Source: Glycera tridactyla (Eukaryota). From it: a stretch of 64,000 nt of DNA. The DNA lies in contig OZ286469.1 in the NCBI GenBank assembly GCA_965644265.1, positions 62,930,001 to 62,994,000 of the forward strand, in the 5' to 3' direction. Positions 1 through 37,907 of this stretch are shown piece after piece. Position 1 is the first letter of the stretch. Every line of letters starts with the position of its first letter. Made by a program: the position numbers and the translations under genes. The notes below the pieces were generated by a model. The model saw only the letters and a program-made list of their open reading frames with translations, was not told the DNA's origin and ran no database searches.

Positions 1-289
1 TGGAAAATTCCCTAGTCTAGCAGAAGCAGCGGATTTAGCCAGTAAACACAGCAAGAGGGAGCTGAAAGAAGTGGTCAGCCCCACAAGATCACCACCCACA
101 CCACGAAGACAACAACAACCAGACAGGCCCAAAACACACACCAGCTTCAAAGACAAGCTGACAGCACCCGCCGCAACATCACAGCCAGCCCTTCATACAG
201 TACAGACTATCAGGTCCTGGACAATCATGCGCTGGTGTGTGCCCCAACACCACAGGATGGGCACGCCTGCCATGCAGGATTTCAATTGA
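1..289 (+). pseudogene. 3' part of LINE ORF1-derived fragment (partial unit U0)
   Basis: Translates to ...VSPTRSPPTPRRQQQPDRPKTHTSFKDKL as in other units; lacks both 21-bp ACAGGATCAGC.GC.TATGAC repeats (about -41 nt). Confidence 0.8.
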
Positions 290-312
290 CATCAGTTACA
301 AGTAAGCAAGAT

Positions 313-480
313 GATTACATTGCATTGTCAAAAGACAATTTGGCCAACATGAAAGATGTTTTCAGTATGTTACTAACAATTCTCCGCACACTGCAATGAT
401 ATGGGCATACAAGCTAATTTTTTTTGCATCTCAATCATTGCTGTTGGTGACTTGATGCAGTTATCACCAGTCAATATTCT
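313..480 (+). pseudogene. Decayed PIF1-family helicase fragment (present in the spacer of every unit)
   Basis: Reads YIALSKDNLANMKDVFSMLLTILRTLQ*YGHTS*FF(C)ISIIAVGDLMQLSPV; IIAVGDLxQLxPV is PIF1 motif III. Contains stops and a variable T7-T9 run. Confidence 0.7.
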
Positions 481-785
481 AATATATGTGATTTTGAGTA
501 AATTTCACTGAAACTCCAAAAAGAAGATCATGTACAAAACCTCATTCAATGGTCTGCAACATTTGATGTTCTGAATCAATATGGACAAATTATACATCAA
601 TCGATGCAAAATCTTGTCCTGCATTGATGTTCCAAATTTGGTGAAGATCCGTCAGAGTTGTGGAAGAATTTGACGAGGAATGGATATGAAGCTAGACGAA
701 ATCACTTCCTGGCTTCATTTTCGACTGCTGAAACAATCATGACCATCAGTTGCTTTCGCTCACGTCCGTGAGTGTGCCTTATATC

Positions 786-1511
786 ATGAAAGAAAAGGCT
801 CACTTGCCTATCGCTACCCAGACGTTGTCTGCAGTTACTATATCTTCGTCGTCGCAAACCAAGAGAGAACCTGTCGTCGTACAGTCCCCGGAGGTACTCA
901 TCATGAGCAGCTCCCATGTTGCCAGGATTCCCTCCAGTGCCCTGCAGGGTGCCACCAACGTGTCTCTAGCCGGTCGCGAGGGATATACTTGGGGTGATGC
1001 CCTAAAAGTGCTCCAGGGCAGGATGGAACCAGCCCGGGGGACCGTACCCCTCAGCGATCTACAGCAGTTAATACTTGATAGTGATGTGTGCGTGTTTGTC
1101 TACGGTTCTAACGATTTGGCCCGTAGATTCTTTGATGTGAAGCTGGGGGTGTGTCGAGGGCCTACCTCAGCTGAGGTTGTTGCAGATATGAAAGCCTTTC
1201 TATCTTATGTTCTCTACCTTCGAGTAAAGGCTGGTTTGCCTGTGCCACGTATCCACGTGTTGAGTGTTCTTGTGAGGCCAGATTGGGGACAAGAACTTGT
1301 GGATGCCGCGTGGAGGGTGAATGACGCTGTTTCAGCTCACCCTGACGTGGCATCTTTAATCATCCCTTTCTGGTTTCACCCGGAGTCCCACATCCGCCCT
1401 CCGACTGCACGAGGAAGTGTGGACAACAAGCATCTGCATCCCTATCTTTACAAAGAACTATTGAAGACTATAAAATGCGAGGTGAGGGGTCATGCTCCTG
1501 GTGACTGGTGA
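786..1511 (+). CDS. SGNH/GDSL-like hydrolase SGNH1, unit U1 (241 aa from ATG 786)
   Basis: Blocks: SSSH (G>S variant of GSSH), AGREG, YGSND, DNKH. Confidence 0.75.
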   Translation: MKEKAHLPIATQTLSAVTISSSSQTKREPVVVQSPEVLIMSSSHVARIPSSALQGATNVSLAGREGYTWGDALKVLQGRMEPARGTVPLSDLQQLILDSDVCVFVYGSNDLARRFFDVKLGVCRGPTSAEVVADMKAFLSYVLYLRVKAGLPVPRIHVLSVLVRPDWGQELVDAAWRVNDAVSAHPDVASLIIPFWFHPESHIRPPTARGSVDNKHLHPYLYKELLKTIKCEVRGHAPGDW

Positions 1512-1529
1512 GAGGTGATGTTTCTTGTT

Positions 1530-2099
1530 ATGTCCCTTTTGTATGTTCATAAATATACTGCCTCGAGCGCTGCTGCTACTATATCTACCAAGACTGCTGC
1601 GGTCTCTGCGACTATTTCTACACAGACTGCTACATCGAGCGCCTCTGCTACTACTTCTACCCAGACTGCTGCGTCCTCTACGACTATTTCGACACAGACG
1701 TCCGACGTGAAGGTTCAACCTGTATCAATACAGACTTTTGCAGTGCCATCCCTATCTTCGTCCTTGTCTTCTTCAGGTTCAAAAGTTCTCATCATGGGTA
1801 GCTCCCACGTGGCCCGGATTCCTGCTTCATTGCTAGAGGGAGCAACTAACGTGACTTTGGCTGGGCGAGAGGGCTTCACTTGGTCTGAAGCCCTACAAGT
1901 TTTGCAGGGAACAAAGGAGCCTTCGCGTGGGGACTTGTCTGCTGCTGCAATCCGAGACTTGATTCTAACAAGTACTGTTAGAGAAACTGTCACCCAGCAA
2001 GCAGGCCAAAAACCCATCTCAGGAAATCCAATCAGTTTCCAGCCCAGCACTGGACGATCTGGGATACACTCTATTGAACATAGAGAGCCTAGACACTAG
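1530..2099 (+). pseudogene. Partial SGNH paralogue SGNH2 (Ser/Thr/Ala repeats + blocks I-II only), U1
   Basis: IMGSSHVARIP...AGREGFTWSEAL; homology ends at DLILTSTV (~1980), then the frame reads into LINE sequence. No GSND or DxxH. Confidence 0.8.
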
Positions 2100-3160
2100 C
2101 CTAGGAAACACCATCATGGAGACGCCTACAAACACACTCACACAACCACCACACACACCAACATACAGCAGTGTAGTAGCAACAGCAATCATGTCGCCAA
2201 CCACACAGATGCTCCCAAACAAACAGCGCAGCAGACAGCTTAACCCTATCCCCACAGCAGAAGAGTTAGCAGCACATCAGAAACAGAATAGCAGACATCA
2301 GATCAAGATGCCATCTCCTAGGATCACAACAAAAACTGTGAAGAAAGCCAGCAACCCACCGATCAAGTATCTGTCCAACTATGACAGATACTACGAGCAC
2401 CTCTACCTTCCAGAGAGGGCACCTGAAGTAGGGCAGGGAGAAGTCGAGATCGAAGCACTAGACTGCTTCTCTAGGAAGTACGGGCTTATCCCATCATCCT
2501 ATGTGACCCAGATGGCGTCAGACAAACAGCACATTGACAGGTCATCCAACGAACAGCATGTCCAGATCCACTGGGTAGAGGGACACTACATCACCTCACA
2601 ACTCAAAAACAAGAAACTGAAGATCTGGGACTAGACCAACCAAAAACATCATCCAGAGGCTCACCCCACAGATCAAGGCGCTCTATGAGGAGAGCCAATT
2701 CGACCTGGTGCAGCACAGAATAGTGCAGAACCAGAATAACAGCACAGACTGTGGCCCCTTCGCAGCAGCCTTCGCCCAAATCCTGGTCATGACGAAGGCT
2801 GACTTGGGACAAATCGAGTTCCAGCAGGGCTCAATACGGGAAAAATTCCAGGCCAACCTCAACACCCTGGAGTCTCTGCCCTTCAAAACGAAGAGGAATC
2901 CGTTGAAAATCAACGACATCCTTGACCAGGCTGCCTCAAATGAAGTCTTTGCCAGGCAGACCATTCTAGAAGAAGCAGATGGAAAATTCCCTAGTCTAGC
3001 AGAAGCAGCGGATTTAGCCAGTAAACACAGCAAGAGGGAGCTGAAAGAAGTGGTCAGCCCCACAAGATCACCACCCACACCACGAAGACAACAACCAGAC
3101 AGGCCCAAAACACACACCAGCTTCAAAGACAAGCTGACAACACCCGCCGCAACATCATAG
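2074..3160 (+). pseudogene. LINE ORF1 fragment with Ulp1-like protease, disrupted, U1
   Basis: CT deletion at TGGGA^CTAGACC gives a stop at 2634; remainder 2708-3160. Confidence 0.8.
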
Positions 3161-3803
3161 CCAGCCCTGCATACAGTACAGACTATCAGGTCCTGGACAA
3201 TCATGCGCTGGTGTGTGCCCCAACACCACAGAATCAGCAGCTTATGACACAGGATCAGCGGCCTATGACACAGATGGGCACGCCTGCCATGCAGGATTTC
3301 AATTGACATCAGTTACAAGTAAGCAAGATGATTACATTGCATTGTCAAAAGACAATTTGGCCAACATGAAAGATGTTTTTAGTATGTGACTAACAATTCT
3401 CCGCACACTGCAATGATATGGGCATACAAGCTAATTTTTTTTTGCATCTCAATCATTGCTGTTGGTGACTTGATGCAGTTATCACCAGTCAATATTCTAA
3501 TATATGTGATTTTGAGTAAATTTCACTGAAACTCCAAAAAGAAGATCATGTACAAAACCTCATTCAATGGTCTGCAACATTTGATGTTCTGGATCAATAT
3601 GGACAAATTATACATCAATCGATGCAAAATCTCGTCCTGCATTGATGTTCCAAATTTGGTGAAGATCCTTCAGAGTTGTGGAAGAATTTGACGAGGAATG
3701 GATATGAAGCTAGACGAAATCACTTCCTGGCTTCATTTTCGACTGCTGAAACAATCATGACCATCAGTTGCTTTCGCTCACGTCCGTGAGTGTGCCTTAT
3801 ATC

Positions 3804-4415
3804 ATGAAAGAAAAGGCTCACTTGCCTATCGCTACCCAGACGTTGTCTGCAGTTACTATATCTTCGTCGTTGCAAACCAAGAGAGAACCTGTCGTCGTAC
3901 AGTCCCCGAAGGTACTCATCATGGGCAGCTCCCATGTTGCCAGGATTCCCTCCAGTGCCCTGCAGGGTGCCACCAACGTGTCTCTAGCCGGTCGCGAGGG
4001 ATATACTTGGGGTGATGCCCTAAAAGTGCTCCAGGGCAGGATGGAACCAGCCCGGGGGACCGTGCCCCTCAGCGATCTACAGCAGTTAATACTTGATAGT
4101 GATGTGTGCGTGTTTGTCTACGGTTCTAACGATTTGGCCCGTAGATTCTTTGATGTGAAGCTGGGGGTGTGTCGAGGGCCTACCTCAGCTGAGGTTGTTG
4201 CAGATATGAAAGCCTTTCTATCTTATGTTCTCTACCTTCGAGTAAAGGCTGGTTTGCCTGTGCCACGTATCCACGTGTTGAGTGTTCTTGTGAGGCCAGA
4301 TTGGGGACAAGAACTTGTGGATGCCGCGTGGAGGGTGAATGACGCTGTTTCAGCTCACCCTGACGTGGCATCTTTAATCATCCCTTTCTGGTTTCACCCG
4401 GAGTCCCACATCTGA
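3804..4415 (+). pseudogene. SGNH1 U2, truncated before the catalytic DNKH
   Basis: Small deletion after HPESHI gives TGA; the same lesion is in U8. Confidence 0.8.
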
Positions 4416-4541
4416 CTGCACGAGGAAGTGTGGACAACAAGCATCTGCATCCCTATCTTTACAAAGAACTATTGAAGACTATAAAATGCGAGGTGAGGGG
4501 TCATGCTCCTGGTGACTGGTGAGAGGTGATGTTTCTGTATT

Positions 4542-5087
4542 ATGTCCCTTTTGTATGTTCATAAATATACTGCCTCGAGCGCTGCTGCTACTATATCTAC
4601 CAAGACTGCTGCGGTCTCTCCGACTATTTCTACACAGACTGCTACATCGAGCGCCTCTGCTACTACTTCTACCCAGACTGCTGCGTCCTCTACGACTATT
4701 TCGACACAGACGTCCGACGTGAAGGTTCAACCTGTATCAATACAGACTTTTGCAGTGCCATCCCTATCTTCGTCCTTGTCTCCTTCAGGTTCAAAAGTTC
4801 TCATCATGGGTAGCTCCCACGTGGCCCGGATTCCTGCTTCATTGCTAGAGGGAGCAACTAACGTGACTTTGGCTGGGCGAGAGGGCTTCACTTGGTCTGA
4901 AGCCCTACAAGTTTTGCAGGGAAGAAAGGAGCCTTCGCGTGGGGACTTGTCTGCTGCTGCAATCCGAGACTTGATTCTAACAAGTACTGTTAGAGAAACT
5001 GTCACCCAGCAAGCAGGCCGAACCCATCTCAGGAAATCCAATCAGTTTCCAGCCCAGCACTGGACGATCTGGGATACACTCTATTGA
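4542..5087 (+). pseudogene. SGNH2 partial, U2
   Basis: As U1; extra frameshift near 5020. Confidence 0.75.
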
Positions 5088-6173
5088 ACATAGAGAGCCT
5101 AGACACTAGCCTAGGAAACACCATCATGGAGACACCTACAAACACACTCACACAACCACCACACACACCAACATACAGCAGTGTAGTAGCAACAGCAATC
5201 ATGTCGCCAACCACACAGATGCTCACAAAAATCCCCGCAGCAGACAGCTTAACCCAATCCCCACAGCAGAAGAGCTAGCAGCACATCAGAAACAGAATAG
5301 CAGACATCAGATCAAGATGCCATCTCCTAGGATCACAACAAAAACTGTGAAGAAAGCCAGCAACCCACCGATCAAGTATCTGTCCAACTATGACAGATAC
5401 TACAAGCACCTCTACCTTCCAGAGAGGGCACCTGAAGTAGGGCAGGGAGAAGTCGAGATCGAAGCACTAGACTGCTTCTCTAGGAAGTACGGGCTTATCC
5501 CATCATCCTATGTGACCCAGATGGCGTCAGAAAAACAGCACATTGACAGGTCATCCAAAAAACAGCATGTCCAGATCCACTGGGTGAGGGACACTACATC
5601 ACCTCACAACTCAAAAACAAGAAACTGAAGATCTGGGACTCTAGACCAACCAAAAACATCATCCAGAGGCTCACCCCACAGATCAAGGCGCTCTATGAGG
5701 AGAGCCAATTCGACCTGGTGCAGCACAGAATAGTGCAGAACCAGAATAACAGCACAGACTGTGGCCCCTTCGCAGCAGCCTTCGCCCAAATCCTGGTCAT
5801 GACGAAGGCTGACTTGGGACAAATCGAGTTCCAGCAGGGCTCAATACGGGAAAAATTCCAGGCCAACCTCAACACCCTGGAGTCTCTGCCCTTCAAAACG
5901 AAGAGGAATCCGTTGAAAATCAACGACATCCTTGACCAGGCTGCCTCAAATGAAGTCTTTGCCAGGCAGACCATTCTAGAAGAAGCAGCTGGAAAATTCC
6001 CTAGTCTAGCAGAAGCAGCGGATTTAGCCAGTAAACACAGCAAGAGGGAGCTGAAAGAAGTGGTCAGCCCCACAAGATCACCACCCACACCACGAAGACA
6101 ACAACAACCAGACAGGCCCAAAACACACACCAGCTTCAAAGACAAGCTGACAGCACCCGCCGCAACATCATAG
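5084..6173 (+). pseudogene. ORF1/Ulp1-like fragment, frameshifted, U2
   Basis: Broken into ORFs 5084-5278, 5317-5628 and 5718-6173. Confidence 0.8.
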
Positions 6174-6815
6174 CCAGCCCTGCATACAGTACAGACTATC
6201 AGGTCCTGGACAATCATGCGCTGGTGTGTGCCCCAACACCACAGGATCAGCAGCTTATGACACAGGATCAGCGGCCTATGACACAGATGGGCACGCCTGC
6301 CATGCAGGATTTCAATTGACATCAGTTACAAGTAAGCAAGATGATTACATTGCATTGTCAAAAGACAATTTGGCCAACATGAAAGATGTTTTTAGTATGT
6401 TACTAACAATTCTCCGCACACTGCAATGATATGGGCATACAAGCTAATTTTTTTTGCATCTCAATCATTGCTGTTGGTGACTTGATGCAGTTATCACCAG
6501 TCAATATTCTAATATATGTGATTTTGAGTAAATTTCACTGAAACTCCAAAAAGAAGATCATGTACAAAACCTCATTCAATGGTCTGCAACATTTGATGTT
6601 CTGAATCAATATGGACAAATTATACATCAATCGATGCAAAATCTCGTCCTGCATTGATGTTCCAAATTTGGTGAAGATCCTTCAGAGTTGTGGAAGAATT
6701 TGACGAGGAATGGATATGAAGCTAGACGAAATCACTTCCTGGCTTCATTTTCGACTGCTGAAACAATCATGACCATCAGTTGCTTTCGCTCACGTCCGTG
6801 AGTGTGCCTTATATC

Positions 6816-7541
6816 ATGAAAGAAAAGGCTCACTTGCCTATCGCTACCCAGACGTTGTCTGCAGTTACTATATCTTCGTCGTCGCAAACCAAGAGAGAAC
6901 CTGTCGTCGTACAGTCCCCGAAGGTACTCATCATGGGCAGCTCCCATGTTGCCAGGATTCCCTCCAGTGCCCTGCAGGGTGCCACCAACATGTCTCTAGC
7001 CGGTCGCGAGGGATATACCTGGGGTGATGCCCTAAAAGTGCTCCAGGGCAGGATGGAACCAGCCCGGGGGACCGTGCCCCTCAGCGATCTACAGCAGTTA
7101 ATACTTGATAGTGATGTGTGCGTGTTTGTCTACGGTTCTAACGATTTGGCCCGTGGATTCTTTGATGTAAAGCTGGGGGTGTGTCGAGGGCCTACCTCAG
7201 CTGAGGTTGTTGCAGATATGAAAGCCTTTCTATCTTATGTTCTCTACCTTCGAGTAAAGGCTGGTTTGCCTGTGCCACGTATCCACGTGTTGAGTGTTCT
7301 TGTGAGGCCAGATTGGGGACAAGAACTTGTGGATGCCGCGTGGAGGGTGAATGACGCTGTTTCAGCTCACCCTGACGTAGCATCTTTAATCATCCCTTTC
7401 TGGTTTCACCCGGAGTCCCACATCCGCCCTCTGACTGCACGAGGAAGTGTGGACAACAAGCATCTGCATCCCTATCTTTACAAAGAACTATTGAAGACTA
7501 TAAAATGCGAGGTGAGGGGTCATGCTCCTGGTGACTGGTGA
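6816..7541 (+). CDS. SGNH1 U3, intact
   Basis: GSSH/AGREG/GSND/DNKH all present. Confidence 0.8.
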   Translation: MKEKAHLPIATQTLSAVTISSSSQTKREPVVVQSPKVLIMGSSHVARIPSSALQGATNMSLAGREGYTWGDALKVLQGRMEPARGTVPLSDLQQLILDSDVCVFVYGSNDLARGFFDVKLGVCRGPTSAEVVADMKAFLSYVLYLRVKAGLPVPRIHVLSVLVRPDWGQELVDAAWRVNDAVSAHPDVASLIIPFWFHPESHIRPLTARGSVDNKHLHPYLYKELLKTIKCEVRGHAPGDW

Positions 7542-7560
7542 GAGGTGATGTTTCTGTATT

Positions 7561-8058
7561 ATGTCCCTTTCGTATGTTCATGAATATACTGCCTCGAGCG
7601 CTGCTGCTACTATATCTACCAAGACTGCTGCGGTCTCTGCGACTATTTCTACACAGACGTCCGACGTGAAGGTTCAACCTGTATCAATACAGACTTTTGC
7701 AGTGCCATCCCTATCTTCGTCCTTGTCTTCTTCAGGTTCAAAAGTTCTCATCATGGGTAGCTCCCACGTGGCCCGGATTCCTGCTTCATTGCTAGAGGGA
7801 GCAACTAACGTGACTTTGGCTGGGCGAGAGGGCTTCACTTGGTCTGAAGCCCTACAAGTTTTGCAGGGAAGAAAGGAGCCTTCGCGTGGGGACTTGTCTG
7901 CTGCTGCAATCCGAGACTTGATTCTAACAAGTACTGTTAGAGAAACTGTCACCCAGCAAGCAGGCCAAAAACCCATCTCAGGAAATCCAATCAGTTTCCA
8001 GCCCAGCACTGGACGATCTGGGATACACTCTATTGAACATAGAGAGCCTAGACACTAG
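7561..8058 (+). pseudogene. SGNH2 partial, U3 (72-nt in-frame deletion in the S/T/A repeats)
   Basis: 165 aa versus 189 aa in other units. Confidence 0.75.
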
Positions 8059-8074
8059 CCTAGGAAACACCATC

Positions 8075-9736: not shown

Positions 9737-10462
9737 ATGAAAGAAAAGGCTCACTTGCCTATCGCTACCCAGACGTTGTCTGCAGTTACTATATCTTCGT
9801 CGTCGCAAACCAAGAGAGAACCTGTCGTCGTACAGTCCCCGAAGGTACTCATCATGGGCAGCTCCCATGTTGCCAGGATTCCCTCCAGTGCCCTGCTGGG
9901 TGCCACCAACGTGTCTCTAGCCGGTCGCGAGGGATATACTTGGGGTGATGCCCTAAAAGTGCTCCAGGGCAGGATGGAACCAGCCCGGGGGACCGTGCCC
10001 CTCAGCGATCTACAGCAGTTAATACTTGATAGTGATGTGTGCGTGTTTGTCTACGGTTCTAACGATTTGGCCCGTAGATTCTTTGATGTGAAGCTGGGGG
10101 TGTGTCGAGGGCCTACCTCAGCTGAGGTTGTTGCAGATATGAAAGTCTTTCTATCTTATGTTCTCTACCTTCGAGTAAAGGCTGGTTTGCCTGTGCCACG
10201 TATCCACGTGTTGAGTGTTCTTGTGAGGCCAGATTGGGGACAAGAACTTGTGGATGCCGCGTGGAGGGTGAATGACGCTGTTTCAGCTCACCCTGACGTG
10301 GCATCTTTAATCATCCCTTTCTGGTTTCACCCGGAGTCCCACATCCGCCCTCTGACTGCACGAGGAAGTGTGGACAACAAGCATCTGCATCCCTATCTTT
10401 ACAAAGAACTATTGAAGACTATAAAATGCGAGGTGAGGGGTCATGCTCCTGGTGACTGGTGA
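9737..10462 (+). CDS. SGNH1 U4, intact
   Basis: All four SGNH blocks. Confidence 0.8.
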   Translation: MKEKAHLPIATQTLSAVTISSSSQTKREPVVVQSPKVLIMGSSHVARIPSSALLGATNVSLAGREGYTWGDALKVLQGRMEPARGTVPLSDLQQLILDSDVCVFVYGSNDLARRFFDVKLGVCRGPTSAEVVADMKVFLSYVLYLRVKAGLPVPRIHVLSVLVRPDWGQELVDAAWRVNDAVSAHPDVASLIIPFWFHPESHIRPLTARGSVDNKHLHPYLYKELLKTIKCEVRGHAPGDW

Positions 10463-10481
10463 GAGGTGATGTTTCTGTATT

Positions 10482-11051
10482 ATGTCCCTTTTGTATGTTC
10501 ATAAATATACTGCCTCGAGCGCTGCTGCTACTATATCTACCAAGACTGCTGCGGTCTCTGCGACTATTTCTACACAGACTGCTACATCGAGCGCCTCTGC
10601 TACTACTTCTACCCAGACTGCTGCGTCCTCTACGACTATTTCGACACAGACGTCCGACGTGAAGGTTCAACCTGTATCGATACAGACTTTTGCAGTGCCA
10701 TCCCTATCTTCGTCCTTGTCTTCTTCAGGTTCAAAAGTTCTCATCATGGGTAGCTCCCACGTGGCCCAGATTCCTGCTTCATTGCTAGAGGGAGCAACTA
10801 ACGTGACTTTGGCTGGGCGAGAGGGCTTCACTTGGTCTGAAGCCCTACAAGTTTTGCAGGGAAGAAAGGAGCCTTCGCGTGGGGACTTGTCTGCTGCTGC
10901 AATCCGAGACTTGATTCTAACAAGTACTGTTAGAGAAACTGTCACCCAGCAAGCAGGCCAAAAACCCATCTCAGGAAATCCAATCAGTTTCCAGCCCAGC
11001 ACTGGACGATCTGGGATACACTCTATTGAACATAGAGAGCCTAGACACTAG
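10482..11051 (+). pseudogene. SGNH2 partial, U4
   Basis: As U1. Confidence 0.75.
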
Positions 11052-11067
11052 CCTAGGAAACACCATC

Positions 11068-12204
11068 ATGGAGACACCTACAAACACACTCACACAACCA
11101 CCACACACACCAACATACAGCAGTGTAGTAGCAACAGCAATCATGTCGCCAACCACACAGATGCTCCCAAACAAACCGCGCAGCAGACAGCTTAACCCTA
11201 TCCCCACAGCAGAAGAGTTAGCAGCACATCAGAAACAGAATAGCAGACATCAGATCAAGATGCCATCTCCTAGGATCACAACAAAAACTGTGGAGAAAGC
11301 CAGCAACCCACCGATCAAGTATCTGTCCAACTATGACAGATACTACGAGCACCTCTACCTTCCAGAGAGGGCACCTAAAGTAGGGCAGGGAGAAGTCGAG
11401 ATCGAAGCACTAGACTGCTTCTCTAGGAAGTACGGGCTTATCCCATCATCCTATGTGACCCAGATGGCGTCAGAAAAACAGCACATTGACAGGTCATCCA
11501 ACAAACAGCATGTCCAGATCCACTGGGTAGAGGGACACTACATCACCTCACAACTCAAAAACAAGAAACTGAAGATCTGGGACTCTAGACCAACCAAAAA
11601 CATCATCCAGAGGCTCACCCCACAGATCAAGGCGCTCTATGAGGAGAGCCAATTCGACCTGGTGCAGCACAGAATAGTGCAGAACCAGAATAACAGCACA
11701 GACTGTGGCCCCTTCGCAGCAGCCTTCGCCCAAATCCTGGTCATGACGAAGGCTGACTTGGGACAAATCGAGTTCCAGCAGGGCTCAATACGGGATAAAT
11801 TCCAGGCCAACCTCAACACCCTGGAGTCTCTGCCCTTCAAAACGAAGAGGAATCCGTTGAAAATCAACGACATCCTTGACCAGGCTGCCTCAAATGAAGT
11901 CTTTGCCAGGCAGACCATTCTAGAAGAAGCAGCTGGAAAATTCCCTAGTCTAGCAGAAGCAGCGGATTTAGCCAGTAAACACAGCAAGAGGGAGCTGAAA
12001 GAAGTGGTCAGCCACACAAGATCACCACCCACACCACGAAGACAACAACAACCAGACAGGCCCAAAACACACACCAGCTTCAAAGACAAGCTGACAGCAC
12101 CCGCTGCAACATCACAGCCAGTCCTGCATACAGTACAGACTATCAGGTCCTGGACAATCATGCGCTGGTGTGTGCCCCAACACCACAGGATCAGCAGCTT
12201 ATGA
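11068..12204 (+). CDS. Open Ulp1/C48-like protease ORF (ORF1-derived, 378 aa from first ATG), U4
   Basis: His codon 11536-11538, WDS Asp, Cys codon 11704-11706; ATG in ATCATGG context. Confidence 0.7.
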   Translation: METPTNTLTQPPHTPTYSSVVATAIMSPTTQMLPNKPRSRQLNPIPTAEELAAHQKQNSRHQIKMPSPRITTKTVEKASNPPIKYLSNYDRYYEHLYLPERAPKVGQGEVEIEALDCFSRKYGLIPSSYVTQMASEKQHIDRSSNKQHVQIHWVEGHYITSQLKNKKLKIWDSRPTKNIIQRLTPQIKALYEESQFDLVQHRIVQNQNNSTDCGPFAAAFAQILVMTKADLGQIEFQQGSIRDKFQANLNTLESLPFKTKRNPLKINDILDQAASNEVFARQTILEEAAGKFPSLAEAADLASKHSKRELKEVVSHTRSPPTPRRQQQPDRPKTHTSFKDKLTAPAATSQPVLHTVQTIRSWTIMRWCVPQHHRISSL

Positions 12205-12759
12205 CACAGGATCAGCGGCCTATGACACAGATGGGCACGCCTGCCATGCAGGATTTCAATTGACATCAGTTACAAGTAAGCAAGATGATTACATTGCATT
12301 GTCAAAAGACAATTTGGCCAACATGAAAGATGTTTTTAGTATGTTACTAACAATTCTCCGCACACTGCAATGATATGGGCATACAAGCTAATTTTTTTTG
12401 CATCTCAATCATTGCTGTTGGTGACTTGATGCAGTTATCACCAGTCAATATTCTAATATATGTGATTTTGAGTAAATTTCACTGAAACTCCAAAAAGAAG
12501 ATCATGTACAAAACCTCATTCAATGGTCTGCAACATTTGATGTTCTGAATCAATATTGACAAATTATACATCAATCGATGCAAAATCTCGTCCTGCATTG
12601 ATGTTCCAAATTTGGTGAAGATCCGTCAGAGTTGTGGAAGAATTTGACGAGGAATGGATATGAAGCTAGACGAAATCACTTCCTGGCTTCATTTTCGACT
12701 GCTGAAACAATCATGACCATCAGTTGCTTTCGCTCACGTCCGTGAATTTGCCTTATATC

Positions 12760-13485
12760 ATGAAAGAAAAGGCTCACTTGCCTATCGCTACCCAGACGTT
12801 GTCTGCAGTTACTATATTTTCGTCGTCGCAAACCAAGAGAGAACCTGTCGTCGTACAGTCCCCGAAGGTACTCATCATGGGCAGCTCCCATGTTGCCAGG
12901 ATTCCCTCCAGTGCCCTGCAGGGTGCCACCAACGTGTCTCTAGCCGGTCGCGAGGGATATACTTGGGGTGATGCCCTAAAAGTGCTCAAGGGCAGGATGG
13001 AACCAGCCCAGGGGACCGTGCCCCTCAGCGATCTACAGCAGTTAATACTTGATAGTGATGTGTGCGTGTTTGTCTACGGTTCTAACGATTTGGCCCATAG
13101 ATTCTTTGATGTGAAGCTGGGGGTGTGTCGAGGGCCTACCTCAGCTGAGGTTGTTGCAGATATGAAAGCCTTTCTATCTTATGTTCTCTACCTTCGAGTA
13201 AAGGCTGGTTTGCCTGTGCCACGTATCCACGTGTTGAGTGTTCTTGTGAGGCCAGATTGGGGACAAGAACTTGTGGATGCCACGTGGAGGGTGAATGACG
13301 CTGTTTCAGCTCACCCTGACGTGGCATCTTTGATCATCCCTTTCTGGTTTCACCCGGAGTCCCACATCCGCCCTCTGACTGCACGAGGAAGTGTGGACAA
13401 CAAGCATCTGCATCCCTATCTTTACAAAGAACTATTGAAGACTATAAAATGCGAGGTGAGGGGTCATGCTCCTGGTGACTGGTGA
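12760..13485 (+). CDS. SGNH1 U5, intact
   Basis: All four blocks. Confidence 0.8.
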   Translation: MKEKAHLPIATQTLSAVTIFSSSQTKREPVVVQSPKVLIMGSSHVARIPSSALQGATNVSLAGREGYTWGDALKVLKGRMEPAQGTVPLSDLQQLILDSDVCVFVYGSNDLAHRFFDVKLGVCRGPTSAEVVADMKAFLSYVLYLRVKAGLPVPRIHVLSVLVRPDWGQELVDATWRVNDAVSAHPDVASLIIPFWFHPESHIRPLTARGSVDNKHLHPYLYKELLKTIKCEVRGHAPGDW

Positions 13486-25546: not shown

Positions 25547-25565
25547 GAGGTGATGTTTCTGTATT

Positions 25566-28561: not shown

Positions 28562-28580
28562 GAGGTGATGTTTCTGTATT

Positions 28581-29150
28581 ATGTCCCTTTTGTATGTTCA
28601 TAAATATACTGCCTCGAGCGCTGCTGCTACTATATCTACCAAGACTGCTGCGGTCTCTGCGACTATCTCTACACAGACTGCTACATCGAGCGCCTCTGCT
28701 ACTACTTCTACCCAGACTGCTGCGTCCTCTACGACTATTTCGACACAGACGTCCGACGTGAAGGTTCAACCTGTATCAATACAGACTTTTGCAGTGCCAT
28801 CCCTATCTTCGTCCTTGTCTTCTTCAGGTTCAAAAGTTCTCATCATGGGTAGCTCCTACGTTGCCCGGATTCCTGCTTCATTGCTAGAGGGAGCAACTAA
28901 CGTGACTTTGGCTGGGCGAGAGGGCTTCACTTGGTCTGAAGCCCTACAAGTTTTGCAGGGAAGAAAGGAGCCTTCGCGTGGGGACTTGTCTGCTGCTGCA
29001 ATCCGAGACTTGATTCTAACAAGTACTGTTAGAGAAACTGTCACCCAGCAAGCAGGACAAAAACCCATCTCAGGAAATCCAATCAGTTTCCAGCCCAGCA
29101 CTGGACGATCTGGGATACACTCTATTGAACATAGAGAGCCTAGACACTAG
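28581..29150 (+). pseudogene. SGNH2 partial, U10
   Basis: GSSY variant, shared with U11. Confidence 0.75.
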
Positions 29151-30301
29151 CCTAGGAAACACCATCATGCGGACACCTACAAACACACTCACACAACCAC
29201 CACACACACCAACATACAGCAGTGTAGTAGCAACAGCAATCATGTCGCCAACCACACAGATGCTCCCAAACAAACCGGGCAGCAGACAGCTTAACCCTAT
29301 CCCCACAGCAGAAGAGTTAGCAGCACATCAGAAACAGAATAGCAGACATCAGATCAAGATGCCATCTCCTAGGATCACAACAAAAACTGTGGAGAAAGCC
29401 AGCGACCCACCGATCAAGTATCTGTCCAACTATGACAGATACTATGAGCACCTCTACCTTCCAGAGAGGGCACCTGAAGTAGGGCAGGGAGAAGTCGAGA
29501 TCGAAGCACGACTGCTTCTCTAGGAAGTACGGGCTTATCCCATCATCCTATGTGACCCAGATGGCGTCAGACAAACAGCACATTGACAGGTCATCCAACA
29601 AACAGCATGTCCAGATCCACTGGGTAGAGGGACACTACATCACCTCATAACTCAAAAACAAGAAACTGAAGATCTGGGACTCTAGACCAACCAAAAACAT
29701 CATCCAGAGGCTCACCCCACAGATCAAGCTGCTCTATGAGGAGAGCCAATTCGACCTGGTGCAGCACAGAATAGTGCAGAACCAGAATAACAGCACAGAC
29801 TGTGGCCCCTTCGCAGCAGCCTTCGCCCAAATCCTGGTCATGACGAAGGCTGACTAGGGACAAATTGAGTTCCAGCAGGGCTCAATACGGGAAAAATTCC
29901 AGGCCAACCTCAACACCCTGGAGTCTCTGCCCTTCAAAACGAAGAGGAATCCGTTGAAAATCAACGACATCCTTGACCAGGCTGCCTCAAATGAAGTCTT
30001 TGCCAGGCAGACCATTCTAGAAGAAGCAGCTGGAAAATTCCCTAGTCTAGCAATAGCAGCGGATTTAGCCAGTAAACACAGCAAGAGGGAGCTGAAAGAA
30101 GTGGTCAGCCCCACAAGATCACCACCCACACCACGAAGACAACAACAACCAGACAGGCCCAAAACACACACCAGCTTCAAAGACAAGCTGACAGCACCCG
30201 CCGCAACATCACAGCCAGCCCTGCATACAGTACAGACTATCAGGTCCTGGACAATCATGCGCTGGTGTGTGCCCCAACACCACAAGATCAGCAGCTTATG
30301 A
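29125..30301 (+). pseudogene. ORF1/Ulp1-like fragment, disrupted, U10
   Basis: 2-nt deletion (GAAGCAC^GACTG) plus nonsense changes; shared with U11. Confidence 0.8.
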
Positions 30302-30386
30302 CACAGGATCAGCGGCCTATGACACAGATGGGCACGCCTGCCATGCAGGATTTCAATTGACATCAGTCACAAGTAAGCAAGATGAT

Positions 30387-30542
30387 TACATTGCATTGTC
30401 AAAAGACAATTTGGCCAACATGAAAGATGTTTTCAGTATGTTACTAACAATTCTCCGCACACTGCAATGATATGGGCATACAAGCTAATTTTTTTGCATC
30501 TCAATCATTGCTGTTGGTGACTTGATGCAGTTATCACCAGTC
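30387..30542 (+). pseudogene. PIF1-helicase relic, in-frame (T7) version
   Basis: With seven T the whole YIALSKDNL...SIIAVGDLMQLSPV segment is in one frame with two stops. Confidence 0.72.
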
Positions 30543-30855
30543 AATATTCTAATATATGTGATTTTGAGTAAATTTCACTGAAACTCCAAAAAGAAGATCA
30601 TGTACAAAACCTCATTCAATGGTCTGCAACATTTGATGTTCTCAATCAATATGGACAAATTATACATCAATCGATGCAAAATCTCGTCCTGCATTGATGT
30701 TCCAAATTTGGTGAAGATCCGTCAGAGTTGTGGAAGAATTTGACGAGGAATGGATATGAAGCTAGACGAAATCAGTTCCTGGCTTCATTTTCGACTGCTG
30801 AAACAATCATGACCATCAGTTGCTTTCGCTCACGTCCGTGAGTGTGCCTTATATC

Positions 30856-31581
30856 ATGAAAGAAAAGGCTCACTTGCCTATCGCTACCCAGACGTTGTCT
30901 GCAGTTACTATATCTTCGTCGTCACAAACCAAGAGAGAACCTGTCGTCGTACAGTCCCCGAAGGTACTCATCATGGGCAGCTCCCATGTTGCCAGGATTC
31001 CCTCCAGTGCCCTGCAGGGTGCCACCAACGTGTCTCTAGCCGGTCGCGAGGGATATACTTGGGGTGATGCCCTAAAAGTGCTCCAGGGCAGGATGGAACC
31101 AGCCCGGGGGACCGTGCCCCTCAGCGATCTACAGCAGTTAATACTTGATAGTGATGTGTGCGTGTTTGTCTACGGTTCTAACGATTTGGCCCGTAGATTC
31201 TTTGATGTGAAGCTGGGGGTGTGTCGAGGGCCTACCTCAGCTGAGGTTGTTGCAGATATGAAAGCCTTTCTATCTTATGTTCTCTACCTTCGAGTAAAGG
31301 CTGGTTTGCCTGTGCCACGTATCTACGTGTTGAGTGTTCTTGTGAGGCCAGATTGGGGACAAGAACTTGTGGATGCCGCGTGGAGGGTGAATGACGCTGT
31401 TTCAGCTCACCCTGACGTGGCATCTTTAATCATCCCTTTCTGGTTTCACCCGGAGTCCCACATCCGCCCTCTGACTGCACGAGGAAGTGTGGACAACAAG
31501 CATCTGCATCCCTATCTTTACAAAGAACTATTGAAGACTATAAAATGCGAGGTGAGGGGTCATGCTCCTGGTGACTGGTGA
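30856..31581 (+). CDS. SGNH1 U11, intact
   Basis: All four blocks. Confidence 0.8.
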   Translation: MKEKAHLPIATQTLSAVTISSSSQTKREPVVVQSPKVLIMGSSHVARIPSSALQGATNVSLAGREGYTWGDALKVLQGRMEPARGTVPLSDLQQLILDSDVCVFVYGSNDLARRFFDVKLGVCRGPTSAEVVADMKAFLSYVLYLRVKAGLPVPRIYVLSVLVRPDWGQELVDAAWRVNDAVSAHPDVASLIIPFWFHPESHIRPLTARGSVDNKHLHPYLYKELLKTIKCEVRGHAPGDW

Positions 31582-31600
31582 GAGGTGATGTTTCTGTATT

Positions 31601-32170
31601 ATGTCCCTTTTGTATGTTCATAAATATACTGCCTCGAGCGCTGCTGCTACTATATCTACCAAGACTGCTGCGGTCTCTGCGACTATTTCTACACAGACTG
31701 CTACATCGAGCGCCTCTGCTACTACTTCTACCCAGACTGCTGCGTCCTCTACGACTATTTCGACACAGACGTCCGACGTGAAGGTTCAACCTGTATCAAT
31801 ACAGACTTTTGCAGTGCCATCCCTATCTTCGTCCTTCTCTTCTTCAGGTTCAAAAGTTCTCATCATGGGTAGCTCCTACGTTGCCCGGATTCCTGCTTCA
31901 TTGCTAGAGGGAGCAACTAACGTGACTTTGGCTGGGCGAGAGGGCTTCACTTGGTCTGAAGCCCTACAAGTTTTGCAGGGAAGAAAGGAGCCTTCGCGTG
32001 GGGACTTGTCTGCTGCTGCAATCCGAGACTTGATTCTAACAAGTACTGTTAGAGAAACTGTCACCCAGCAAGCAGGACAAAAACCCATCTCAGGAAATCC
32101 AATCAGTTTCCAGCCCAGCACTGGACGATCTGGGATACACTCTATTGAACATAGAGAGCCTAGACACTAG
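31601..32170 (+). pseudogene. SGNH2 partial, U11
   Basis: As U10. Confidence 0.75.
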
Positions 32171-33321
32171 CCTAGGAAACACCATCATGCAGACACCTAC
32201 AAACACACTCACACAACCACCACACACACCAACATACAGCAGTGTAGTAGCAACAGCAATCATGTCGCCAACCACACAGATGCTCCCAAACAAACCGGGC
32301 AGCAGACAGCTTAACCCTATCCCCACAGCAGAAGAGTTAGCAGCACATCAGAAACAGAATAGCAGACATCAGATCAAGATGCCATCTCCTAGGATCACAA
32401 CAAAAACTGTGGAGAAAGCCAGCAACCCACCGATCAAGTATCTGTCCAACTATGACAGATACTATGAGCACCTCTACCTTCCAGAGAGGGCACCTGAAGT
32501 AGGGCAGGGAGAAGTCGAGATCGAAGCACGACTGCTTCTCTAGGAAGTACGGGCTTATCCCATCATCCTATGTGACCCAGATGGCGTCAGACAAACAGCA
32601 CATTGACAGGTCATCCAACAAACAGCATGTCCAGATCCACTGGGTAGAGGGACACTACATCACCTCATAACTCAAAAACAAGAAACTGAAGATCTGGGAC
32701 TCTAGACCAACCAAAAACATCATCCAGAGGCTCACCCCACAGATCAAGCTGCTCTATGAGGAGAGCCAATTCGACCTGGTGCAGCACAGAATAGTGCAGA
32801 ACCAGAATAACAGCACAGACTGTGGCCCCTTCGCAGCAGCCTTCGCCCAAATCCTGGTCATGACGAAGGCTGACTAGGGACAAATTGAGTTCCAGCAGGG
32901 CTCAATACGGGAAAAATTCCAGGCCAACCTCAACACCCTGGAGTCTCTGCCCTTCAAAACGAAGAGGAATCCGTTGAAAATCAACGACATCCTTGACCAG
33001 GCTGCCTCAAATGAAGTCTTTGCCAGGCAGACCATTCTAGAAGAAGCAGCTGGAAAATTCCCTAGTCTAGCAGAAGCAGCGGATTTAGCCAGTAAACACA
33101 GCAAGAGGGAGCTGAAAGAAGTGGTCAGCCCCACAAGATCACCACCCACACCACGAAGACAACAACAACCAGACAGGCCCAAAACACACACCAGCTTCAA
33201 AGACAAGCTGACAGCACCCGCCGCAACATCACAGCCAGCCCTGCATACAGTACAGACTATCAGGTCCTGGACAATCATGCGCTGGTGTGTGCCCCAACAC
33301 CACAAGATCAGCAGCTTATGA
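32145..33321 (+). pseudogene. ORF1/Ulp1-like fragment, disrupted, U11
   Basis: Same lesions as U10. Confidence 0.8.
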
Positions 33322-33875
33322 CACAGGATCAGCGGCCTATGACACAGATGGGCACGCCTGCCATGCAGGATTTCAATTGACATCAGTAACAAGTAAGCAA
33401 GATGATTACATTGCATTGTCAAAAGACAATTTGGCCAACATGAAAGATGTTTTCAGTATGTTACTAACAATTCTCCGCACACTGCAATGATATGGGCATA
33501 CAAGCTAATTTTTTTGCATCTCAATCATTGCTGTTGGTGACTTGATGCAGTTATCACCAGTCAATATTCTAATATATGTGATTTTGAGTAAATTTCACTG
33601 AAACTCCAAAAAGAAGATCATGTACAAAACCTCATTCAATGGTCTGCAACATTTGATGTTCTCAATCAATATGGACAAATTATACATCAATCGATGCAAA
33701 ATCTCGTCCTGCATTGATGTTCCAAATTTGGTGAAGATCCGTCAGAGTTGTGGAAGAATTTGACGAGGAATGGATATGAAGCTAGACGAAATCAGTTCCT
33801 GGCTTCATTTTCGACTGCTGAAACAATCATGACCATCAGTTGCTTTCGCTCACGTCCGTGAGTGTGCCTTATATC

Positions 33876-34601
33876 ATGAAAGAAAAGGCTCACTTGCCTA
33901 TCGCTACCCAGACGTTGTCTGCAGTTACTATATCTTCGTCGTCGCAAACCAAGAGAGAACCTGTCGTCGTACAGTCCCCGAAGGTACTCATCATGGGCAG
34001 CTCCCATGTTGCCAGGATTCCCTCCAGTGCCCTGCAGGGTGCCACCAACGTGTCTCTAGCCGGTCGCGAGGGATATACTTGGGGTGATGCCCTAAAAGTG
34101 CTCCAGGGCAGGATGGAACCAGCCCGGGGGACCGTGCCCCTCAGCGATCTACAGCAGTTAATACTTGATAGTGATGTGTGCGTGTTTGTCTACGGTTCTA
34201 ACGATTTGGCCCGTAGATTCTTTGATGTGAAGCTGGGGGTGTGTCGAGGGCCTACCTCAGCTGAGGTTGTTGCAGATATGAAAGCCTTTCTATCTTATGT
34301 TCTCTACCTTCGAGTAAAGGCTGGTTTGCCTGTGCCACGTATCCACGTGTTGAGTGTTCTTGTGAGGCCAGATTGGGGACAAGAACTTGTGGATGCCGCG
34401 TGGAGGGTGAATGACGCTGTTTCAGCTCACCCTGACGTGGCATCTTTAATCATCCCTTTCTGGTTTCACCCGGAGTCCCACATCCGCCCTCTGACTGCAC
34501 GAGGAAGTGTGGACAACAAGCATCTGCATCCCTATCTTTACAAAGAACTATTGAAGACTATAAAATGCGAGGTGAGGGGTCATGCTCCTGGTGACTGGTG
34601 A
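33876..34601 (+). CDS. SGNH1 U12, intact
   Basis: All four blocks. Confidence 0.8.
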   Translation: MKEKAHLPIATQTLSAVTISSSSQTKREPVVVQSPKVLIMGSSHVARIPSSALQGATNVSLAGREGYTWGDALKVLQGRMEPARGTVPLSDLQQLILDSDVCVFVYGSNDLARRFFDVKLGVCRGPTSAEVVADMKAFLSYVLYLRVKAGLPVPRIHVLSVLVRPDWGQELVDAAWRVNDAVSAHPDVASLIIPFWFHPESHIRPLTARGSVDNKHLHPYLYKELLKTIKCEVRGHAPGDW

Positions 34602-34620
34602 GAGGTGATGTTTCTGTATT

Positions 34621-35190
34621 ATGTCCCTTTTGTATGTTCATAAATATACTGCCTCGAGCGCTGCTGCTACTATATCTACCAAGACTGCTGCGGTCTCTGC
34701 GACTATTTCTACACAGACTGCTACATCGAGCGCCTCTGCTACTACTTCTACCCAGACTGCTGCGTCCTCTACGACTATTTCGACACAGACGTCCGACGTG
34801 AAGGTTCAACCTGTATCAATACAGACTTTTGCAGTGCCATCCCTATCTTCGTCCTTCTCTTCTTCAGGTTCAAAAGTTCTCATCATGGGTAGCTCCCACG
34901 TGGCCCGGATTCCTGCTTCATTGCTAGAGGGAGCAACTAACGTGACTTTGGCTGGGCGAGAGGGCTTCACTTGGTCTGAAGCCTTACAAGTTTTGCAGGG
35001 AAGAAAGGAGCCTTCGCGTGGGGACTTGTCTGCTGCTGCAATCCGAGACTTGATTCTAACAAGTACTGTTAGAGAAACTGTCACCCAGCAAGCAGGACAA
35101 AAACCCATCTCAGGAAATCCAATCAGTTTCCAGCCCAGCACTGGACGATCTGGGATACACTCTATTGAACATAGAGAGCCTAGACACTAG
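34621..35190 (+). pseudogene. SGNH2 partial, U12
   Basis: As U1. Confidence 0.75.
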
Positions 35191-36338
35191 CCTAGAAAAC
35201 ACCATCATGGAGACACCTACAAACACACTCACACAACCACCACACACACCAACATACAGCAGTGTAGTAGCAACAGCAATCATGTCGCCAACCACACAGA
35301 TGCTCCCAAACAAACCGGGCAGCAGACAGCTTAACCCTATCCCCACAGCAGAAGAGTTAGCAGCACATCAGAAACAGAATAGCAGACATCAGATCAAGAT
35401 GCCATCTCCTAGGATCACAACAAAAACTGTGGAGAAAGCCAGCAACCCACCGATCAAGTATCTGTCCAACTATGACAGATACTACGAGCACCTCTACCTT
35501 CCAGAGAGGGCACCTGAAGTAGGGCAGGGAGAAGTCGAGATCGAAGCACTAGACTGCTTCTCTAGGAAGTACGGGCTTATCCCATCATCCTATGTAACCC
35601 AGATGGCGTCAGAAAAACAGCACATTGACAGGTCATCCAACGAACAGCATGTCCAGATCCACTGGGTAGAGGGACACTACATCACCTCACAACTCAAAAA
35701 CAAGAAACTGAAGATCTGGGACTAGACCAACCAAAAACATCATCCAGAGGCTCACCCCACAGATCAAGGCGCTCTATGAGGAGAGCCAATTCGACCTGGT
35801 GCAGCACAGAATAGTGCAGAACCAGAATAACAGCACAGACTGTGGCCCCTTCGCAGCAGCCTTCGCCCAAATCCTGGTCATGACGAAGGCTGACTTGGGA
35901 CAAATCGAGTTCCAGCAGGGCTCAATACGGGAAAAATTCCAGGCCAACCTCAACACCCTGGAGTCTCTGCCCTTCAAAACGAAGAGGAATCCGTTGAAAA
36001 TCAACGACATCCTTGACCAGGCTGCCTCAAATGAAGTCTTTGCCAGGCAGACCATTCTAGAAGAAGCAGCTGGAAAATTCCCTAGTCTAGCAATAGCAGC
36101 GGATTTAGCCAGTAAACACAGCAAGAGGGAGCTGAAAGAAGTGGTCAGCCCCACAAGATCACCACCCACACCACGAAGACAACAACAACCAGACAGGCCC
36201 AAAACACACACCAGCTTCAAAGACAAGCTGACAGCACCCGCCGCAACATCACAGCCAGCCCTGCATACAGTACAGACTATCAGGTCCTGGACAATCATGC
36301 GCTGGTGTGTGCCCCAACACCACAGGATCAGCAGCTAA
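35165..36338 (+). pseudogene. ORF1/Ulp1-like fragment, disrupted, U12
   Basis: CT-deletion stop at 35725. Confidence 0.8.
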
Positions 36339-37907
36339 TGACACAGGATCAGCGGCCTATGACACAGATGGGCACGCCTGCCATGCAGGATTTCAATTGA
36401 CATCAGTTACAAGTAAGCAAGATGATTACATTGCATTGTCAAAAGACAATTTGGCCAACATGAAAGATGTTTTCAGTATGTTACTAACAATTCTCCGCAC
36501 ACTGCAATGATATGGGCATACAAGCTAATTTTTTTTGCATCTCAATCATTGCTGTTGGTGACTTGATGCAGTTATCACCAGTCAATATTCTAATATATGT
36601 GATTTTGAGTAAATTTCACTGAAACTCCAAAAAGAAGATCATGTACAAAACCTCATTCACTGGTCTGCAACATTTGATGTTCTGAATCAATATGGACAAA
36701 TTATACATCAATCGATGCAAAATCTCGTCCTGCATTGATGTTCCAAATTTGGTGAAGATCCGTCAGAGTTGTGGAGGAATTTGACGAGGAATGGATATGA
36801 AGCTAGACGAAATCAGTTCCTGGCTTTAATTTTGACTGCTGAAACAATCATGACCATCAGTTGCTTTCGCTCACGTCCGTGAGCGTGCCTTATATCATGA
36901 AAGAAAAGGCCCACTTGCCACTTGCTCACCGACCTCGGAAGCAGCAACATCTCCTCTCTCCAGCTCTCCAGCAGCCTCAACAACCTCGGACTACTCTCAC
37001 TATCATCCTACTTCAGCTTAGCAGCCTTAGCTATTCACCATCACTCTCACAGCAGCCAAGTGTTTCTACGAAACAGGTAGTGGTGAATTTTACATTTAGA
37101 TTATCATTATTGTTGTTTTTGCCAGGGTTTTTGTCAGGATTAGCTTAGAACATCGTTTGTTTACATCTGTATTTTTGGAAACTTAGCTCTCAACCGCCGG
37201 AATCTATCGTCGTGTCGGAAAACTAGTTTGAATCATAGGATCATCTTGAAAATCGCAAAGCACCTAGCTTCACGGACTATCTATAAGCCCTAGAATTTTC
37301 GAGCGAATAGTACTAGAATTACGGAAACTACGGGACTTTTAGCGACACGGAAATAGCACATCTTGATCTGACTCTCATCTAGCATCATCACTCTCACTTT
37401 CGGCTACGATATCTCCGCGGCATTTATATCCAACTTTCTGGTACATTACATGCTTATTTAGAATCGTTATAGCTTTGTATACATTGATTTTGGATTAGTT
37501 TGGATTGCTAGTTTGGAAATTATCGCGCATAAACCGGGAAAACTTATCACCGCGTCGGAAAATTACTTAAAATCGCTCGATCGCCACGAAAATCGCTCAG
37601 CATCTAGGTATACCGATTATCTATACGCTCTGAAATTATTGAATAGCTAGCTATAAAATTGACGGAATTACGGCATCTTTTGTGACGCGGAATTTGTAAT
37701 TTATTATCGGAAAGCTAAGTAGGTCAACGCGGTGACGGTACCGAGCGACTTTACGCGTCACTGAACACGAGAGCGTGAGTACATCACTGAGCGCGGTCAT
37801 CTCATCAACACCTCTCACTCATCAACACCTCACTTCATCAACACCTCTCCATCAGCATCATCATCTCATCACTCTCATTTCTCTCATCATCACATCACAA
37901 ACTCAAC

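Follow-up and report, generated by a model that had tools for sequence, protein, structure and literature searches.

The stretch of DNA analysed here (the window) comprises 64,000 nucleotides (nt) of the Glycera tridactyla genome (GenBank assembly GCA_965644265.1, contig OZ286469.1, forward-strand positions 62,930,001 to 62,994,000), and positions 1–36919 of it, on the plus strand, form a tandem array with a period of ~3.02 kb. We consider it probable that this array is a macrosatellite of recent origin, that its 3-kb monomer was pieced together from transposon remains coming almost entirely from one I-like clade of long interspersed nuclear elements (LINEs), and that its copies are drifting neutrally. 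Each unit contains an open reading frame (ORF) for an SGNH-type esterase (SGNH-A), a piece from the interior of a paralogous SGNH gene (SGNH-B), a fragment of a LINE ORF1 with a Ulp1/C48-like protease domain, and a short tail in which a PIF1-helicase-like relic is plausible.

A tandem array of nearly identical composite units

Comparison of the unit at 10001–13023 with the window delimited a partial unit at 1–1049 followed by 12 units, detected as full-length head-to-tail matches on the plus strand starting at 1050, 4068, 7080, 10001, 13024, 16042, 19060, 22078, 25091, 28106, 31120, and 34140. Units are 2,921–3,023 bp long and share 98.3%–99.6% pairwise identity; the last one (34140–36919) stops at unit position ~2780. 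Internal repeats of 72, 33, and 21 bp detected by Tandem Repeats Finder return every ~3.02 kb. A preliminary description of this DNA, made from the sequence alone, had proposed an array of ~3.02-kb period, young, and built of composite units with all parts in the same orientation. The self-comparison, the identity between copies, and the part assignments given below bear out these three points, respectively.

The array is most likely genuine rather than the product of copying by the assembler. The window contains no runs of N. Indels of 72, 41, 30, 7, and 6 bp are private to copies, which also differ at 162 substitution variants, 114 of them singletons, at a transition/transversion ratio of 2.06. 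Because such variants are private to copies and mutation-like in spectrum, the array appears to be neither a collapsed nor an expanded assembly. CpG transitions make up 17% of the variants, compared with 5.8% of sites located in CpG, a threefold excess that reads as the signature of methylated DNA. A higher-order repeat with a period of six units was also considered and received no support from the identity matrix.

Comparison at the level of reads used Logan assembler contigs of four runs. Contigs from one run (X1, ~20 million letters) covered most of the unit at 98%–99% identity with a word depth of ~5, and a second run from that sample, of 1.7 million letters, also contained pieces of the unit. 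Since a data set this small should yield contigs mainly from repeats, the unit is presumably multicopy in the X1 sample.

An SGNH esterase frame and a fragment of its paralog

SGNH-A occurs once per unit and, in the representative unit, extends from ATG to stop at 9737–10462 (plus strand; 241 amino acids, MKEK...PGDW). Evidence at the level of the predicted fold supports its assignment as an SGNH-type esterase. The AlphaFold2 (AF2) model of the domain (predicted local distance difference test [pLDDT] 67; predicted template modelling score [pTM] 0.68) was compared with the PDB using Foldseek, and among the 50 matches listed, 45 were natural GDSL/SGNH esterases, including platelet-activating factor (PAF) acetylhydrolase, and five were designed scaffolds, with an E value of 2.8e-5 for the best match and template modelling (TM) scores of 0.5–0.6. 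Four SGNH blocks (GSSH, AGREG, GSND, and D-x-KHLH) are kept across the paralogs in the window and in P0001–P0003, with Ser (block I), Gly (block II), Asn (block III), and Asp-x-x-His (block V) scored as the catalytic residues. These fold matches and conserved blocks uphold the earlier identification of an SGNH hydrolase part despite the absence of a Pfam match: Pfam returned no matches to the SGNH ORFs of the window at E 0.1.

The SGNH-A frame is intact in 10 of the 12 copies. The copies starting at 3768 and 21778 have in common a 7-bp frameshifting deletion that removes block V, which contains the catalytic His, and changes confined to single copies replace the block I Gly with Ser in one and the block III Gly with Ala in another. 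SGNH-A also lacks an N-terminal region of 60–100 amino acids that is present in its relatives. Loose contig ends bound the SGNH-A-derived stretch at unit positions ~2617 and ~504.

SGNH-B (10505–10930, plus strand) follows and derives from the interior of a paralogous SGNH gene, comprising a T/S-rich region and blocks I–II and ending in ...IRDLIL(T); its left limit is tentatively placed at ~10504 by a loose X1 contig end. An SGNH gene of 344 amino acids downstream of the array (46390–47424, minus strand) served for comparison. Over 66 shared domain codons, SGNH-B is 79% identical to this gene at the amino acid level, with synonymous sites saturated and ~73% identity in DNA, so the comparison between paralogs confirms the half-SGNH part that had been proposed. 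Among the paralogs, the proportion of nonsynonymous differences in the SGNH domain (pN) is 0.12–0.25, whereas the synonymous proportion (pS) is saturated, which indicates a real, constrained protein family. Relatives beyond the window are few. When the 344-amino-acid gene was compared with 5.8 billion proteins by a word-based search, no match emerged, and an exhaustive HMMER search of 1.84 billion cluster representatives recovered only three true relatives (P0001–P0003), all on short metagenome contigs.

A LINE ORF1 fragment with a Ulp1-like domain

The third part of the unit (10931 to ~12100, plus strand) corresponds to approximately codon 7 to codon 400 of a LINE ORF1. It is joined to SGNH-B at ~10930 out of frame, with 2–4 nt of microhomology, and does not bring its own start codon. 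Frameshifts or stops interrupt its frame in 10 of 12 copies, with only the units starting at 7080 and 10001 being clean. Its protein sequence matches, at ~50% identity, the ORF1 N-termini of the two LINE copies located downstream of the array on the plus strand (copy 1, 36910–45768; copy 2, 49659–57448).

Within the fragment, a Ulp1/C48-like core (PF02902; 11518–11754, plus strand) retains a readable His-Asp-Cys triad and the motif of the oxyanion-hole Gln (HVQIHW ... WDS ... Q-x-NSTDCGP). PF02902 matched the whole array ORF with an E value of 4.5e-4 (20.6 bits) and the isolated array domain with 22.6 bits, and it ranked first among families for each of the three paralogous domains (24.6, 22.6, and 19.4 bits; cut-off, 20.7). 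In protein-atlas features, the domain of LINE copy 2 scored 0.94 and shared 185 features with C48 clusters. A profile of the Ulp1-like region gave no match in the PDB, and its AF2 model (pLDDT 38) was too poor for use. The proposal of a LINE-derived Ulp1-like part is nonetheless confirmed by the ~50% identity to LINE ORF1s together with the top PF02902 matches.

In one X1 contig, position 37926, in the 5' untranslated region (5'UTR) of the LINE, is joined to unit position 928. This contig indicates that a LINE subfamily with an ORF1 of the array type exists, and this subfamily is the likely donor. The three ORF1 N-terminal bodies (38025–39056, 50771–51913, and 10931–12100) are only ~50% identical in protein, yet the 5'UTRs are 89%–97% alike. 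The contrast is seen in both LINE copies of the window and in the X1 contig, which combines a 5'UTR of the copy 1 type with an ORF1 of the array type, and suggests that ORF1 modules may have been exchanged between LINE subfamilies.

One LINE clade supplies the SGNH and Ulp1-like parts

The preliminary description had taken the unit to combine pieces of at least three unrelated mobile-element families. Four loci that pair an SGNH gene with a LINE ORF2 reduce this to one LINE clade plus, at most, the PIF1-like scrap. In the window, the 344-amino-acid SGNH gene is convergent with the ORF2 of LINE copy 1, which encodes reverse transcriptase (RT) and RNase H, and the two stops are 621 nt apart. The same convergent arrangement recurs in three unrelated contigs: in an ENA metagenome locus, where an SGNH gene 46% identical to that of the window lies 463 nt from an RT and RNase H ORF2 that is 47% identical over 878 amino acids up to the C-terminus; in JAAUYI01, where the SGNH gene is 30% identical and lies 1041 nt from a homologous ORF2 C-terminus; and in NCBI assembly GCA_029979705.1, where a 309-amino-acid SGNH gene on the opposite strand lies 1725 nt from an ORF2 of 1292 amino acids with apurinic endonuclease (APE), RT, and RNase H domains.

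The last of these loci is a whole element. Its ORF1 (1527 amino acids) is 34% identical to the window ORF1 over 228 amino acids in the Ulp1-like region and 34% identical over 292 amino acids in the central zinc-knuckle region. Its SGNH homolog matched with a probability of 99.9% by hhalign (E 2e-36) and scored 20.8 bits against Lipase_GDSL_2, below the cut-off of 32.9. Across the three external loci, ORF2 is 42%–47% and SGNH 30%–46% identical to the window versions, and the two diverge in step; the nearest named relatives of ORF2 are decapod crustacean proteins, at 33%–44% identity. The recurrence of the convergent ORF2/SGNH pair in four loci traces SGNH-A, SGNH-B, and the ORF1 fragment to one LINE family. 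The simplest reading of these sequences is that the SGNH gene would be an antisense gene in the 3' part of an I-like, Ulp1-bearing LINE clade.

The tail and a PIF1-like relic

The unit ends in a tail of ~0.5 kb (~12205–12736). Positions 12287–12482 (plus strand) contain the candidate PIF1-helicase-like relic, with the readable stretches …DVFSM… and …IIAVGDLMQLSPV…, in a frame split by stops and by a poly-T length variant. The two stretches resemble the PIF1-helicase motifs DxxSM and GDxxQLxPV. The relic spans at most ~65 codons, with stops; across the window and the retrieved loci, its motif is confined to the array units, each of which has it once. The remainder of the tail (12483–12736, plus strand) includes the DNA immediately 5' of the following SGNH-A ORF. 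Neither this stretch nor the tail as a whole resembled the rest of the window or the 5' flank of the 344-amino-acid gene.

Evidence on the relic is divided. In a language-model feature search, 84 of the 100 named atlas neighbors of a 44-amino-acid piece belonged to PF05970 (score 0.94). By contrast, no stop-free piece matched Pfam at E 10, and the PDB returned no PIF1 match, only chance matches to pannexin. A PIF1 relic, as had been proposed for this part, is weakly supported and is plausible rather than established. As the scrap is far more decayed than the neighboring parts, it appears to have been old debris already when the unit was amplified.

Variation among the copies

The array copies are not visibly constrained and drift neutrally. 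With the majority base of each aligned position taken as the reference for variants, nonsynonymous and synonymous changes numbered 29 and 10 in SGNH-A (omega 0.94), 18 and 8 in SGNH-B (omega 0.86), 26 and 8 in the first half of the ORF1 fragment (omega 0.93), and 22 and 8 in its second half (omega 0.79). An omega of 0.3 or less is rejected for SGNH-A (P = 7e-4). Variant density is 48–60 per kb in every segment of the unit, including the noncoding tail. The suggestion that the array represents a dosage-amplified esterase/protease locus does not fit omega values of 0.79–0.94 in all parts, a coding variant density equal to that of the tail, or a protease frame broken in 10 of 12 copies. We attribute the mostly open SGNH-A frames to the youth of the array rather than to selection.

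Two comparisons weigh against this view. Disabling lesions number one event in 723 nt of SGNH-A versus 13 in 1281 nt of the ORF1 frame (P = 0.017), and frames are intact in 10 of 12 versus 2 of 12 copies, respectively (Fisher P = 0.003). This depletion of lesions may be a hint of selection for an open SGNH-A frame. Moreover, a ratio of nonsynonymous to synonymous rates (dN/dS) near 1 is expected for very recent duplicates too, even functional ones.

Array end and origin

At the downstream end of the array, a short sequence at 36910–36919 (plus strand), C(C/T)CACTTGCC, is common to the unit and the 5' end of the LINE. The two LINE copies become homologous to each other from 36910 and 49659 onward, and homology to the array stops at 36919, within the first SGNH-A codons. 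These coordinates are consistent with an origin in which the patchwork would at first have been single-copy, abutting the 5' end of a full-length LINE. A single tandem duplication, with its right breakpoint ~10 nt inside the 5' end of the resident LINE and its left breakpoint near SGNH-A codon 9, would have created the first repeat, and unequal crossover would then have expanded it to the ~12 copies seen in the window. Under this model, the ATG and first eight codons of SGNH-A would derive from DNA flanking the LINE, and the leftmost unit should start at unit position ~2781 (TATCGCTACC...) without a tail.

A LINE insertion that joined its 5' end to the array by microhomology, truncating the last unit, is a possible alternative. 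We prefer a single tandem duplication with moderate confidence. Two points stand against this preference: the SGNH-A residues just left of the junction (K..P) faintly resemble the paralogs, which would favor an insertion, and the left end of the array, where the duplication model makes its prediction, lies outside the window. With an end junction that can be read and an origin that can be dated from ~1% divergence between copies, the array offers a test case for the birth of gene-sized satellites.

Other explanations for the array

An amplified functional esterase locus, in which the unit junction provided the antisense SGNH gene with a new start and the gene was then multiplied for dosage with the other parts as passengers, seems unlikely to us. 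SGNH-A frames are open in 10 of 12 copies with all catalytic blocks, they have fewer disabling lesions than the ORF1 passenger, at the P value given above, and the SGNH family is under long-term purifying selection; macrosatellites bearing ORFs are known (PMC5687341, PMC3018141), as are multicopy stand-alone SGNH genes expressed in the testis of fish (PMC4021074). However, the omega of SGNH-A equals that of the broken ORF1 frame, the Gly changes in blocks I and III are tolerated, block V is lost in two copies, the N-terminal region of the relatives is missing, and the plus strand of the unit has neither AATAAA nor ATTAAA. It is similarly improbable that the array constitutes a newborn multicopy esterase family, with its native N-terminus lost, its start derived from the junction, and its frame kept by selection as the unequal survival of the SGNH-A and ORF1 frames might imply. 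If true, such a family would parallel D4Z4/DUX4 or RS447/USP17 in an invertebrate, drawn from the accessory gene of a retrotransposon. Alternatively, a long precursor transcribed from the array could yield PIWI-interacting or small interfering RNAs against the LINE clade that supplied its fragments. The clade has a copy with an intact 1303-amino-acid ORF1 close to the array, all parts lie on one strand, with SGNH antisense and ORF1 sense to LINE RNA, and the CpG decay suggests a silenced, methylated state. Nonetheless, we regard this role as doubtful, given that the fragments are 50%–73% identical to the neighboring LINE copies and thus too distant for targeting those directly, although a closer donor subfamily exists, as the X1 contig indicates.

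A rolling-circle origin, raised in the preliminary description, is not supported. The unit would then be a nonautonomous Helitron that had captured SGNH and LINE fragments and was copied head to tail by read-through, with the PIF1 relic left from its helicase. This would account for a PIF1-like relic in every unit; Helitrons are known to capture gene fragments in one orientation and to form tandem arrays (PMC12628747), and SGNH genes of fish are linked with Helitrons (PMC4021074). Against it, neither strand of the unit has a GC-rich 3' hairpin followed by CTRR, Pfam detected no Rep domain in the unit, the short, stop-ridden relic matched neither Pfam nor the PDB, and the array breaks off within SGNH-A, where it meets the 5' end of a LINE, instead of finishing at a Helitron terminus. 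We consequently judge this origin distinctly improbable. An assembly artefact, with a few true copies inflated by the assembler, is the least credible of all, as each copy has its own substitutions and indels with a mutation-like spectrum and independent runs carry the unit at 98%–99% identity. Weighing these alternatives, we retain a young, neutrally drifting macrosatellite as the probable explanation, and we infer that the array is without function.

Elements downstream of the array

As had been noted, both the LINE and the SGNH gene have relatives just downstream of the array (36910–47424 and 49659–57448). LINE copy 1 comprises a 5'UTR, an ORF1 with the Ulp1-like domain, and an ORF2 with Pfam matches to RT and RNase H; copy 2 served for scoring the APE domain. 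Its ORF1 is split by a frameshift near 38450 (38440–38480) into frames at 37908–39056 and 38473–41991. Two (AC)n runs (45910–45949 and 46225–46307) are located between the ORF2 stop and the SGNH gene stop. No transposon ends were found around the 344-amino-acid SGNH gene, and the ORFs at 48179–49735 belong to no Pfam family. LINE copy 1 probably extends beyond 47424 and possibly runs up to 49658, adjoining the start of copy 2. The regions upstream in L004 and L005 (the latter being the JAAUYI01 locus) are 80% identical over at least 754 nt, a similarity indicating that the 3' part of the LINE may extend past the SGNH gene and that copy 1 may end where copy 2 begins. The two copies could thus be a head-to-tail pair, with 87%–89% identity at their ends and <70% in the ORF1 body.

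LINE copy 2, which carries the intact ORF1, resumes at 63114–64000 after an interruption by a nested CR1/L2-like LINE on the minus strand (57449–63113), whose APE-RT ORF encodes 972 amino acids (58690–61608). An upstream ORF of the nested element (62537–63205, minus strand) gave weak matches to GDSL esterases, making it a second, unrelated esterase-bearing LINE type in the window. A relationship between the SGNH family of the array and this CR1/L2-type esterase ORF was considered and rejected, since the hhalign comparison with the SGNH profile was not significant.

Comparison with known systems

The array is a macrosatellite and a composite satellite derived from transposable elements (TEs): its unit exceeds ~1 kb, is present in many copies of high identity, and has a TE-derived monomer. 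Composite satellites whose monomers hold successive TE-derived stretches ("TE graveyards") are a described class (PMC12628747), and the expansion of TE dimers into satellites by unequal exchange has also been reported (PMC5932611). The array resembles the TE-graveyard satellites in the TE-derived stretches of its monomer, in head-to-tail amplification, in high identity between copies, and in showing no selection on its content. However, it differs in its gene-sized 3-kb monomer, in retaining one nearly full ORF, and in deriving mostly from one LINE clade.

In humans, the 3.3-kb unit of D4Z4 contains the DUX4 ORF and the 4.7-kb unit of RS447 contains the USP17 protease ORF. Like these two, the array repeats a unit of kilobase scale between ten and a hundred times, and every unit has an ORF, but their ORFs are expressed and conserved, whereas dN/dS among the array copies is ~1. 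Human macrosatellites with kilobase units and an ORF per unit are documented more generally (PMC5687341, PMC3018141). Tandem arrays of truncated Helitrons, attributed to rolling-circle read-through (Xiong et al. 2016, as cited in PMC12628747), are similar in their head-to-tail order, in captured fragments of one orientation, and in a PIF1-like trace. The array differs in having no Helitron termini, no Rep, and an end that is not a Helitron 3' end.

While the array thus belongs to a known kind, its parent LINE architecture is the part without a description in the literature searched, where neither a C48 domain in the ORF1 of a LINE nor an antisense SGNH gene in an RNase H-bearing LINE was found described. 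The parent clade, with C48 in ORF1 and with an antisense esterase that is conserved across at least four distant lineages, is a more useful result than the array itself. If true, the antisense accessory gene would be an addition to known LINE architectures and would bear on what esterases do for retrotransposition. Stand-alone SGNH genes linked to Helitrons in fish, called texim (PMC4021074), have many exons and no RT partner, unlike the LINE-linked SGNH gene described here. Esterases are also known from the ORF1 of CR1/L2-type LINEs (PMC3905857). Both those elements and the parent clade tie an SGNH/PAF acetylhydrolase-like esterase to a non-LTR (long terminal repeat) retrotransposon and keep the Ser-Gly-Asn-His blocks; in the parent clade, an I-like LINE, however, the esterase is not a domain of ORF1 but has a gene to itself, which lies 3' of ORF2 and on the opposite strand.

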